Shown here piece by piece: positions 13,401 through 16,400 of a stretch of DNA of 64,000 nucleotides. The notes below the pieces were generated by a model. The model saw only the letters and a program-made list of their open reading frames with translations, searched no databases and was not told where the DNA came from. Origin of the DNA: Lepidodermella squamata (lineage: Eukaryota; Animalia; Gastrotricha); NCBI GenBank assembly GCA_047495785.1, contig JBLDXI010000024.1, forward strand, positions 3,162,001 through 3,226,000. The letters run 5' to 3'. The position numbers were made by a program, and so were the translations under genes. Each line of letters begins with the position of its first letter. Positions within the stretch are counted from its first letter, which is position 1.

Positions 13401-16400
13401 GAAAACATTCGAGTTGGCTTTCGAAGGGTATTTTTACCTCAATTTCTCCTTTTTGTGGTTAAATTCGATTTTTTTATTTAAGCTTGGTCGTTATAACGAG
13501 AAAACTGGATTTGAGTATATCACTGCCGGCGAGGATAGAAGGACTAGAAACGTTTCCCGCCATGACGTGAATCACACGCGGATAATCACAACCATTGGGG
13601 TTGAGCCGTTCTTGAAGATGAAGGATGACGCTCATCGTCGGGTTGGAAATGATCGATTTGAAGGCTACGTCGCTGATTTGACTCAGGCTGTTGCTGAGTT
13701 GGCTAAATTCAAGTACGAGTTTCGGCTGGTTGGCGACAATGCTTACGGTTCAATGAACGCAACTGGTCACTGGAACGGCATGATGGGAGAAGTCATCGAT
13801 GGGGTTTGTCTCAACATTTAAAATTTAATATTCAATATTAAAATATTAAAATTAAAATTAAAAATTGAAATTTTAAATAGAAAAATTAAATTTGAAAAAT
13901 AGAGATGAAATTAAAAAATACAAATTCAAATTTGAAAATTCGAAAAATTCAAAAAATGATTTAATTTATGTCGAAACTAGAAATTTTAAATTAATTCATT
14001 CTCCAAACGCTTCGCTAGCTGTTTCCTGTAACATATTCCAAGGGCAGATTTTCAATTGAGCCAATTTTTTATCGGTTAGCCGATGTCCATATGGGCACTT
14101 GTAGCAACATGAGCATAAAAAGCTGTCCGTCGAGATAACAGCTGTTCCGAGATATATTTTCGGCTTATCAAAATTTGGGAAGGCTATAAAAGGTCCTGGT
14201 GCAGAGCCAAAATACAATTTTCCTCGAAATTCTTGATAATGGCATTGCGAAAACTGTCATCAGGCTATTCGTGCCCATTAGTAGGCTTCGGGACATTTCT
14301 AGCTAACAATGCGTCCGAGCTCAAAGTTGCCGTGAAAGCAGCTGTTCAAGCTGGTTATCGCCATATAGACACCGCCTATGTCTACAACAATGAAGACGTG
14401 ATAGGCGAGGCTTTGGCCGAACTTTACGCAGCTGGGACGATCAAACGAGAGGACCTGTTCCTTACCACGAAAATCTGGTGCTCGCACTACCGTCCCGATC
14501 TAGTTCTGCCATCTCTGAAGAAGCAGCTGGAAAAACTAAGGACGAATTACGTTGACCTGTACCTAATGCATTTCCCAGTCCCAATGCAGCATATCGAGGG
14601 ACAACTTGTTCCGATGAAAGACGGCAAAATGGCAATTGATCTCAGCCTGAAGATCGAAGATACGTGGCCTAAAATGGAGGAATGCGTTCGGTTGGGACTT
14701 GCTCGTTCAATCGGGATTTCAAATTTCAACATCAAACAAGTTGAGCGGATTCTTAAGATTGCGAAGATCAAGCCTGCGATGATTCAATGCGAGATGCATC
14801 CGGCATTTCAGAACACCAAGCTTTTCGAGTTCTGCAAGAAGCACGATATCGGCTTCACGGCTTACTCGCAATTTGGCTCGCCTGGCTTTGTTGGCCCGAA
14901 TGGTAGGGGAACTGGGGTAGACCTGTTGAACAATCCGATTCTCGTCGAGATCGGGAAGAAGTATGGCAAAACTCCGGCCCATGTCATTTTAAGGTGGCTG
15001 CTTCAACGCGGGGTTTATTCGATCCCGAAAAGTACGACGCCTAGGAGAATTGAGGATAATTTCAGGGTGTTTGATTTTGAGTTGAGCGGTGAGGATATGG
15101 TTAAGATAGCAGCTATGGATACGAATGTTCGCTTCAGCTGGTTTAATCACCCTGGAGTTAAGGAACACCCAGAGTACCCGCATTTGGAAGCTGGCAGCTG
15201 CTAAATTGCGAAAAGCCTTGCATAAGGAAACTTACTATTTCTGAGCCCAACGTTATCAACCGTTTGAAATAAAAATCGCTTGCTATGGCTTCTGATCAAA
15301 TATTATATTTCGCAAATATAATAGTTAAAATAAATAATTATTGAATTATTTTTGAAAAATTCGGATTTTTCGGATCTTTGGAACTTCATAAAGGTTCCAG
15401 ATTTTATATTTTCTCCCATTCTCTAACTTTCCGTTTTATCATCAAACTTTTCAGATTGCTGACATGGCTATTGCACCCTTAACCATAACAGCTCAAAGAG
15501 AGAAAGTCGTTGATTTCACGAAACCCTTCATGACCCTCGGCATATCAATCATGATAAAGAAGCCGCAGAAGACAAAACCCAGCGTATTCTCCTTTCTCGA
15601 TCCTCTTTCCTACGAAATTTGGCTCTGCATCGGCTTCGCGTATATCGGGGTATCAGTTGTCTTATTCTTGGTATCTCGATTCAGCCCATACGAATGGCAT
15701 GAAGATACAGGAGAGGGAGAAGGTAATGGAGTTAGTAGTCGTCTTGAAAGCAGTTCGAACCCTCCGATCGACGGGAGACGTAATAGCGCGAATTCTACCA
15801 ACGAAAGTACAGCTGGAGGGTTCGACCTTGATAGGAAATTGCACCACGGTCCTAACGACAACTTGAAATATTCCTTACCCGCGTATTGCTACAACAGCGT
15901 AATGGGAACCTTCACTGGAAATCGCGACAAATCACCAATTCCAGCAGCCGAACAACCGCCTTATACGTATAACAACGCGAACATGCCGAGGCACAGCCAG
16001 ACCAACTACGACATCGATTTACCAGGTGGGAGGCGGCCGATGAGTGACAGCAGCTCCTCGAAGCCGCAAAGCTTGAGCCAGTTACGCAAAAAGACCTTTA
16101 TCAACGATTTCACGTTTTCAAACGCTCTTTGGTTTTCCCTGGGAGCTTTCATGCGTCAGGACGTTGACATATCCCCAAGATCGGTTTCTGGCAGGATTGT
16201 TGGCTCGGTATGGTGGTTCTTCACTCTGATCATCATCTCGTCGTATACCGCCAACTTGGCTGCCTTTTTGACCGTCGAACGTATGTCAACCCCGATTGAG
16301 TCGGCTGAGGATCTTGCTAAGCAAACTGATATCAAATACGGGACGCTTCGACGCGGCTCAACCGCCCAATTCTTCCAGGCAAGTAGTTCCGATATTTCAG

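Follow-up and report, generated by a model that had tools for sequence, protein, structure and literature searches.

Of the features known to determine how AMPA receptors assemble and conduct, how permeable they are to Ca2+ and whether polyamines block them, the best known is the Q/R site, which vertebrates set by RNA editing. In the window, the 64-kb stretch of DNA analysed here, a first-pass annotation had described an AMPA-like receptor in which this site is an arginine encoded outright as CGT and the near-invariant glycine two residues later is an aspartate. The locus raises the question of whether the arginine is a genuine, editing-free property of an intact gene, and of what a filter that joins it to a new acidic residue might do.

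Positions 16151-16168 read ATG CGT CAG GAC GTT GAC, encoding M-R-Q-D-V-D in frame with a 924-nt exon (15455-16378). M2 aligns without gaps to GluA1-4 (phmmer against the PDB, E 1e-84), where the counterpart is FMQQGCD, and the filter is thus Arg-Gln-Asp-Val-Asp (RQDVD) as against Gln-Gln-Gly-Cys-Asp in GluA1-4; sequence and alignment agree with M2 and its CGT codon as first described. The elements of the pore loop, numbered from the Q/R site, are:

16127..16183, + strand: M2 re-entrant pore loop (alignment to GluA1-4 and relatives)
16154..16156, + strand: CGT, Arg at the Q/R site, GluA2 Q586 (sequence, alignment to GluA1-4)
16160..16165, + strand: GAC GTT, Asp and Val in place of AMPA receptor Gly588-Cys589 (sequence, alignment, pore-loop survey)
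16166..16168, + strand: GAC, the conserved +4 Asp, GluA2 D590 (sequence, alignment)

The Q/R-Q-G-C/S-D selectivity filter is not matched, +2 Gly having become Asp and +3 Cys/Ser having become Val; the site itself, the +1 Gln and the +4 Asp are retained. This departure is the mark of a variant, and membership of the AMPA class is unaffected by it.

The order of domains (amino-terminal domain, S1, M1, re-entrant M2, M3, S2, M4, C-terminal tail) is the AMPA architecture, Pfam recognizes Lig_chan and Lig_chan-Glu_bd, and GluA1-4 are the best solved relatives whether the channel exon (E 1e-84) or the exon for S2 (E 2e-57) is compared. In a tree the gene falls inside the AMPA group, split from the kainate-type rows with support 95, and the short first S1 exon, which resembles ligand-binding cores of both the kainate and the AMPA type, has a slightly higher score against kainate receptors when taken on its own. 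Counterparts of GluA2 P478, T480, R485, S654, T655 and E705 are present, with RGSTAQFF in exon 7 and LLESTMNEY in exon 8, and the glutamate-binding residues that had been reported intact (PLT..R, GST, LLE) were recovered by alignment as APLTIT..R, GST and LLESTMNEY. M3 carries the SYTANLAAF gate motif, and the amino-terminal domain is very divergent.

The 5' exons were placed by homology to the protein P0121, and the exon 2 donor by its GT together with P0121 spacing. P0121 holds Pfam ANF_receptor, to which the window's own match is sub-threshold (E 0.019). The gene model is:

10473..17316, + strand: whole coding region of an AMPA-class iGluR gene, 10 exons, 3600 nt, 1199 codons plus stop (exon model)
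10473..10560, + strand: exon 1, start codon and hydrophobic, signal-peptide-like N-terminus (inferred)
10609..10908, + strand: exon 2, start of the amino-terminal domain (P0121 N-terminus match, E 2e-7)
11980..12626, + strand: exon 3, amino-terminal domain (P0121 match, E 8e-20)
12847..13172, + strand: exon 4, amino-terminal domain (P0121 match, E 1e-11; frame checked)
13223..13427, + strand: exon 5, last part of the amino-terminal domain (ANF_receptor match below threshold, profile positions 308-343)
13483..13803, + strand: exon 6, first part of the S1 ligand-binding segment (PF10613, E 6e-19)
15455..16378, + strand: exon 7, end of S1, M1, long M1-M2 loop, M2, M3 and start of S2 (GluA1-4, E 1e-84; PF00060, PF10613)
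15617..15676, + strand: M1 transmembrane helix (GluA1 alignment)
16241..16267, + strand: SYTANLAAF gate motif of M3 (sequence, GluA1-4 alignment)
16379..16425, + strand: 47-nt intron with a GC donor, GC..AG (exon model)
16426..16864, + strand: exon 8, S2 and first half of M4 (GluA1-4, E 2e-57, including LLESTMNEY)
16914..16975, + strand: exon 9, remaining half of M4 and beginning of the C-terminal tail (RNA-like joints 16860>16913 and 16975>17029)
17029..17316, + strand: exon 10, C-terminal tail ending ...SISMV, then stop (exon model)

All exons are open in phase, their total length is divisible by three, all acceptors are AG, and the donors are GT throughout with the one GC exception. In an RNA-like run (X2), GT..AG joints confirm three introns of the gene, among the joints being one (13426>13482) that confirms the 3' end of exon 5, and a contig contains the letters of exon 2 positions 10866-10905. 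X2 depth is 2-23 over the exons (10-23 over exon 7), about zero in the long intron around a nested gene described below, zero at 16400 within the GC..AG intron, and falls to about zero past 17316, and the joints match the predicted introns. At the place of the GC..AG intron the coding sequence of the metagenome relative P0001 runs straight through, with no intron. The window gene is a real, intact, transcribed AMPA-class subunit gene of a compact-genome invertebrate.

Two further features lie within its span:

15722..16099, + strand: 126-residue insert in the M1-M2 cytoplasmic loop (alignment; GluA1 has ~8 residues there)
14239..15204, + strand: separate aldo-keto reductase (AKR) gene nested in the receptor intron 13804-15454 (PF00248, E 2e-63)

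The insert is rich in Ser, Asn, Pro and Gly and lacks a hydrophobic segment (maximum 19-residue hydropathy 0.22). Inserts also occur at M1-M2 in relatives, 32 of 100 aligned residues being identical between the window gene and P0001. We rejected the notion that it is an unspliced intron: its 378 nt are in frame, partly conserved in P0001 and covered by the RNA-like contigs (depth 10-12), and no GT..AG joint lies there among those listed. The AKR gene has an X2 depth of 20-150, falling to about zero in the flanking intron, and the counterpart of that intron at metagenome locus L001 is 68 nt long and holds no AKR gene. Its best named matches are in oysters and insects at only 45-49%, with no rotifer among the matches; horizontal transfer was ruled out, its relatives being animal AKR1 enzymes.

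The claim that the arginine is genomic and not a product of editing is borne out by the codon itself: because CGT contains no adenosine, ADAR could neither make nor change this Arg. Further, M1, M2 and M3 lie in one exon, the next intron beginning 223 nt downstream; hence no downstream intron corresponds to the one with the editing-complementary sequence in vertebrate GRIA2. The GluA2(R) arrangement, in which Arg arises from a genomic CAG by way of ADAR and an intronic complementary sequence, is thus not matched. A check of the codon against reads, which the first-pass annotation had proposed, gave nothing that contradicts CGT: at the contig level, a run that spans the entire stretch (X1) has no well-supported alternative letter at 16154-16156 among the differences listed.

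How unusual is such a filter? A hard-wired Arg is in itself not new, a genomic Arg at this site being found also in hagfish, in teleost GluA2, in Schistocerca locusts and in several kainate-type genes. The same is stated for hagfish and some teleost AMPA genes in the part of PMC8659423 that cites Kung et al.; a full-text search for hard-wired Q/R-site Arg in invertebrates gave nothing relevant, 'Q/R site' being unsearchable as a phrase. Among 259 receptors Arg or Lys was gained or lost at the site on at least 14 occasions, making a basic residue there a recurrent outcome and tempering the view of editing as the only route. The description of the aspartate is borne out. Glycine occupies +2 in 239 of the 251 AMPA/kainate-type pore loops surveyed, in keeping with its being near-invariant, and in that survey Asp is found there only in four metagenome proteins that share the window gene's motif. 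The unusual part is this +2 Asp, absent from ~255 other surveyed pore loops. A Q/R-site Arg was accompanied by replacement of the +2 Gly (RQD, RQK, RQN, RQS) in 3 of 11 independent pairs, an association that is not significant (p 0.25) on a 259-row tree built with the pore columns kept in.

The motif is not confined to the window. The same M-R-Q-D-V-D occurs at four metagenome loci, encoding P0001 (L001-L003) and the P0002 cluster (L004, P0266, P0267), and the window gene and these proteins form a clade with support 100, outside which fall the AMPA-like proteins of Seison and Didymodactylos. The Arg codon is CGT in the window gene and AGG in the P0001/P0002 relatives, and the Asp and Val codons differ too. 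Because synonymous sites are saturated (pS ~0.8) while M2-M3 is almost unchanged (pN 0.07-0.09), RQDVD is a selected trait of a small clade. The filter is DNA-encoded, maintained by purifying selection and common to all known members of the clade. The tree also sets the clade apart from the hagfish/teleost and locust Arg lineages, in agreement with the proposal that the Arg evolved independently. What had been described as a single odd subunit is instead a lineage trait. The pore loops of relatives, whose survey the annotation had suggested, show as much, and its own caveat, that RQD might be the ancestral state of the clade, holds to the extent that the window gene, P0001 and the P0002 cluster all carry RQDVD. 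In JGI metagenomes an exact degenerate DNA pattern of the motif had 0 matches, and a protein-guided scan returned 42 loci, all of them AMPA genes of the ordinary kind from other animals, in which introns separate M2 from M3; none has RQDVD. A feature search of the ESM Atlas returned generic iGluR clusters only.

With regard to function, the reading that we tentatively put forward, at somewhat less than an even chance, is that the arginine ring of this DNA-encoded and selected filter would confer low Ca2+ permeability and that its aspartate ring would offset the arginine. By analogy with edited GluA2(R), arginines ringing the pore-loop tip would make channels poorly permeable to Ca2+, insensitive to intracellular polyamines and linear in their I-V relation. 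Tetramers probably hold four arginines, because every AMPA-type sequence found in the clade has Arg. In GluA2, G588-C589-D590 form the inner mouth beneath the Q586/Q587 filter, and Cl- enters the upper pore, which has been taken as the explanation of anion permeation in Q586R (PMC7923540). The Asp two residues below the Arg would place a further, negatively charged ring at the upper end of the inner mouth. Such a ring would most likely offset the arginine charge, such that monovalent cations pass and Cl- is disfavoured, and it might perhaps let all-Arg tetramers assemble. What tends against this is that one added Asp may not overcome the block of K+ by four arginines: in simulations of GluA2 two Arg block Ca2+ while K+ still passes, and four block K+ (PMC12377769).

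Taken further, RQDVD might be a charge-compensated all-Arg filter, in which every AMPA-type subunit of the lineage carries Arg and the Asp ring permits both four-Arg assembly and monovalent conduction while excluding Ca2+. We hold this stronger form possible but doubtful. If it is true, nature would have found a way around the block that GluA2(R) homomers show, and fast glutamate receptors impermeable to Ca2+ would have evolved by a second route that needs no editing.

Vertebrate GluA2(R) co-assembles with Gln-type subunits, lowering Ca2+ permeability and polyamine block, and an RQDVD subunit might work in the same way, being inactive alone and modulating heteromers with Gln-type AMPA subunits, its Asp and Val merely tolerated. 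Two arginines suffice against Ca2+ in the simulations while K+ passes (PMC12377769), and since the genome was read through one 64-kb window, Gln-type partners may exist elsewhere in it. However, protein searches found no Gln-type AMPA receptor close to the clade, the nearest non-RQDVD sequences being molluscan or nemertean; RQDVD is retained in both divergent branches; and the conservation of Asp and Val across saturated synonymous divergence argues against neutral side changes. On balance we consider a purely modulatory subunit an unlikely, though serious, candidate.

It is more improbable that conduction is changed or lost, four arginines and a Gly-less filter giving anion or near-zero conduction, with the protein left to a glutamate-binding, scaffold or signalling role. 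The block of K+ by four arginines in the simulations (PMC12377769) would fit this, and replacement of the near-invariant +2 Gly could distort the filter. But M1, M2, M3 (with SYTANLAAF) and M4 are almost as in conducting AMPA receptors and strongly constrained, and a pN of 0.07 would be unexpected in a non-conducting channel; moreover, acidic rings at +2 and +4 should disfavour anions. Finally, it is very hard to credit that the codon is misassembled or wrongly sequenced, or that the gene is a pseudogene copy in decay: the X1 check rests on the differences listed, with 187 weaker ones besides, but all ten exons have open frames bounded by proper splice sites, the RNA-like contigs show splicing where it was predicted, sequence constraint is strong, and the same five residues appear, in different codons, in four independent metagenome contigs.

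The filter is in effect evolution's own double-mutant experiment, a DNA-encoded Arg combined with a replaced near-invariant Gly. As such it bears on whether all-Arg channels can be made to conduct or assemble by an acidic +2 residue, on the part of the inner mouth in cation/anion and Ca2+ selectivity, and on whether Ca2+-impermeable fast glutamate receptors have had repeated editing-free origins.

Among known systems, the ADAR2-edited GluA2(R) of vertebrates belongs to the same class and has the same architecture, with M1, M2, M3 and S2 ~80-90% identical, Arg at the same pore position, and the +1 Gln and +4 Asp retained. It differs in that its Arg comes from an edited CAG, whereas that of the window gene is DNA-encoded as CGT, in an exon that M2 shares with M3 and that is followed by no editing-complementary intron. 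The window gene also has Asp and Val for the +2 Gly and +3 Cys, an M1-M2 loop 126 residues longer and a very divergent amino-terminal domain.

The genes of hagfish (P0126/P0410/P0411, Eptatretus and Myxine) and teleosts (P0007, P0032, P0033, P0037) likewise have a hard-wired Arg that makes editing unnecessary. Unlike the window gene, they retain the canonical R-Q-G-C-D and are vertebrate GluA paralogues, and in the tree the window gene's Arg arose separately, on a protostome-type AMPA branch. The 'glutamate receptor 1-like' of Schistocerca (P0132 cluster, six locust species) is an invertebrate AMPA-class protein with a genome-predicted Q/R-site Arg (ALMRQGCDVSPRS); it keeps Gly-Cys at +2/+3 and belongs to an arthropod branch unrelated to the RQDVD clade. 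An Arg with a non-Gly +2 residue is shared with RQNIN of Didymodactylos carnosus (P0198), RQKVD of a metagenome protein (P0246) and RQSSE of Araneus (P0184). In these, unlike the window gene, the +2 residue is Asn, Lys and Ser, respectively, and the tree places P0246 and P0184 among kainate-type receptors and P0198 within a group of rotifer type.

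The first-pass annotation had read a genomic Arg at the Q/R site, beside an altered filter, at 16151-16168, and the reading was exact: ATG CGT CAG GAC GTT GAC, which shares the reading frame of the 924-nt channel exon (15455-16378) of an AMPA-class receptor subunit gene. In a phmmer search against all solved structures the best matches of this exon were GluA1-4 (E about 1e-84), with [26 protein letters not shown] of the exon aligning gap-free to [26 protein letters not shown] of GluA1-4. This alignment places the CGT-encoded Arg at GluA2 Q586, with Gly588 replaced by Asp and Cys589 by Val, and with Gln587 and Asp590 unchanged, giving the filter RQDVD in place of the canonical QQGCD. 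The gene model has ten exons on the + strand, which sum to 3600 nt, or 1199 codons and a stop.

Features of the receptor gene
10473-10560, +, exon 1
10609-10908, +, exon 2
11980-12626, +, exon 3
12847-13172, +, exon 4
13223-13427, +, exon 5
13483-13803, +, exon 6
15455-16378, +, exon 7, the channel exon
16241-16267, +, SYTANLAAF motif
16426-16864, +, exon 8, the S2 exon
16914-16975, +, exon 9
17029-17316, +, exon 10

The phase of every exon is open as passed from the exon before, acceptors are AG throughout, and the GC donor at 16379 is the sole exception among GT donors, the 47-nt intron 16379-16425 (+) being GC..AG and the remaining eight GT..AG. Pfam detected Lig_chan and Lig_chan-Glu_bd; the amino-terminal exons, too divergent to reach its threshold, match the ATD of P0121 (E 8e-20 and 1e-11), a metagenome relative in which ANF_receptor is present. 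As first annotated, the glutamate-binding motifs are intact, APLTIT..R and GST within the channel exon and LLESTMNEY in the S2 exon (E 2e-57 to GluA1-4). The predicted C-terminus, ...S-I-S-M-V (17302-17316, +), fits the S/T-x-V of class I PDZ-binding tails.

Contigs from two sequencing runs were aligned over 11800-17700. Run X2 behaves as RNA: its contigs omit 13428-13482 and 16976-17028, both with GT..AG ends, and a further joint connects 16860 with 16913. Its depth is zero at 16400, within the GC-AG intron, and over 13770-14163 in the long intron, against 2-23 on the receptor exons. Coverage by the DNA-like run X1 is complete, with haplotype-like pairs of forms in places. At 12191-12446 X1 has two contigs of comparable depth (45 and 49); one of them matches the window exactly, and the other shows 23 differences over 256 nt. 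They may represent divergent haplotypes or gene copies, or the sample may have contained two related organisms. Among the differences listed there was no well-supported alternative letter at 16154-16156, which amounts to an absence of contradiction rather than a base-by-base check.

The cytoplasmic M1-M2 loop carries a disordered-looking 126-residue insert (15722-16099, +; X2 depth 10-12), rich in Ser, Asn, Pro and Gly and without a hydrophobic segment. Inserts stand at the same place in two metagenome relatives, P0001 and P0002; P0001 shares 32 of 100 aligned residues and keeps SLPAY, PxYxY and LSQLxKKTF, and the P0002 insert is shorter and different. The loop is likewise expanded in Drosophila Glu-RI and in sequences from hagfish and trout. 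The insert may serve in docking or regulation.

A complete single-exon aldo-keto reductase (AKR) gene (14239-15204, +; Pfam E 2e-63) lies on the same strand within the 1651-nt intron 13804-15454; X2 depth over it is 20-150, well above that on the receptor exons, though contig depth reflects expression poorly. On L001, a P0001 contig, the corresponding intron measures 68 nt and holds no gene, which makes the nesting lineage-specific. The best named relatives of the AKR are from oysters and insects (45-49%), with metagenome contigs at 52-58%; horizontal transfer was ruled out, the relatives being animal AKR1 enzymes. A second AKR ORF lies at 44635-45618 (-). Elsewhere, four tandem phospholipase-C-delta-like genes (17846-30200, +) were read by eye from ORF translations, with EF-hand-like, catalytic X and Y, and C2-like segments. 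There are also single-exon flytrap (ANF_receptor) ORFs, of about 820-840 residues, the first three a tandem family of close paralogues.

Flytrap ORFs
84-1010, +
2453-4984, +, also with a sub-threshold class C seven-helix match
6396-8867, +
31014-33479, +

We surveyed 251 AMPA/kainate-type pore loops drawn from a word search and an exhaustive search. At the Q/R position 207 of them have Gln and 22 have Arg. Among the Arg loops are those of hagfish AMPA genes (P0126, P0410, P0411), teleost GluA2 paralogues (P0007, P0032, P0033, P0037), the 'glutamate receptor 1-like' gene (P0132 cluster) in six Schistocerca species, and kainate-type genes of Apis, Pollicipes, Araneus, Myxine and a killifish; one barnacle gene has Lys. 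In a 259-row tree the Arg/Lys state switches at least 14 times. A hard-wired basic residue here is therefore recurrent and already known, Arg in hagfish and some teleosts being credited to Kung et al. as cited in PMC8659423, and Arg alone is not new. The +2 Asp, on the other hand, is truly unusual: Gly occupies this position in 239 of the 251 loops, and Asp is confined to the RQDVD clade. Other loops combine Arg with a non-Gly +2 residue (RQSSE in a spider, RQKVD in a metagenome, RQNIN in the bdelloid Didymodactylos), and the association held in 3 of 11 independent pairs (p 0.25, same tree), so it is a lead, not a result.

A possible case of a different origin came from a Pacific-oyster AMPA-like protein, P0075, an ORF of 472 aa from an intron-free Logan contig (L047, run SRR24489178). 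Of its 472 residues a single one departs from the genome-predicted Crassostrea gigas P0282, and it is the one at the Q/R site. In L047 the sequence is ATG CGG CAA (codon 624-626), and in the C. virginica genome ATG CAG CAA (L048, codon 6608-6610); a change from CAG to CGG is what A-to-I editing at this site in a bivalve would leave, or may be a polymorphism. Our literature search found no report of oyster Q/R-site editing.

A word search using the channel exon, whose reach was limited to proteins of 168-534 residues, returned two metagenome proteins with the identical pore loop, P0001 (65% identity over the full exon; 72% in a MAFFT alignment) and P0002 (62%). P0266 and P0267 are additional members of the P0002 cluster. 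The exhaustive search, which covered 1.84 billion cluster representatives, gave no further RQDVD cluster among its best 150 hits, and the JGI metagenome collection contained no RQDVD sequence. The relatives' contigs (L001-L004) read ATG AGG CAA GAC/GAT GTA/GTC GAC; with AGG there and CGT in the window the Arg is genomic, and it has therefore been retained over two or more nucleotide changes. Comparison of the window gene with P0001 or P0002 shows saturation at synonymous sites (pS 0.80-0.84) and a non-synonymous difference of 0.07-0.09 in M2-M3-S2. In the maximum-likelihood tree the three form one clade (SH-aLRT 100) inside the AMPA group (AMPA/kainate-type split, support 95). Its neighbours, weakly supported, are molluscan and nemertean sequences; arthropods, nematodes and the available rotifer sequences fall elsewhere. 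The motif conserved in different codons, these rates and the single clade thus mark RQDVD as a selected, clade-shared state. The annotation had counted a filter widespread in its clade against its own reading; RQDVD is indeed common to the whole of this small clade, which tells in part against that reading, and its Arg, on its own branch in the AMPA group, still stands as independently evolved and selected.

Every AMPA-type sequence known from the clade has Arg, and neither search returned a Gln-type close relative, which favours tetramers with four Arg. In such tetramers the conserved +2 Asp would form a second acidic ring beside the Arg ring, restoring cation conduction; this is the reading we tentatively prefer. 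In the main rival, RQDVD subunits act like GluA2(R) in heteromers whose Gln-type partners are encoded beyond the window. It suits the indication from simulations with electrophysiology that two Arg block Ca2+ (PMC12377769) and calls for partners of the kind the searches did not return; we consider it less likely. That conduction is altered, anionic or lost would suit the K+ block by four Arg indicated in the same study, and is more doubtful still. An artefact or pseudogene, in a gene with open phases and X2 coverage, is nearly excluded.

The observation is thus confirmed and its interpretation partly supported, with the physiology of four-Arg tetramers one that we infer from GluA2. There the working filter is Q586/Q587 and the water-filled inner mouth G588-C589-D590; Cl- enters the upper pore, which was taken as the basis of Q586R anion permeation (PMC7923540), and D590 is indicated to be a main Ca2+ and polyamine site (PMC12377769). 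By analogy with these Q586R, two-Arg and four-Arg data, Arg at the pore-loop tip should reduce both Ca2+ permeability and polyamine block.
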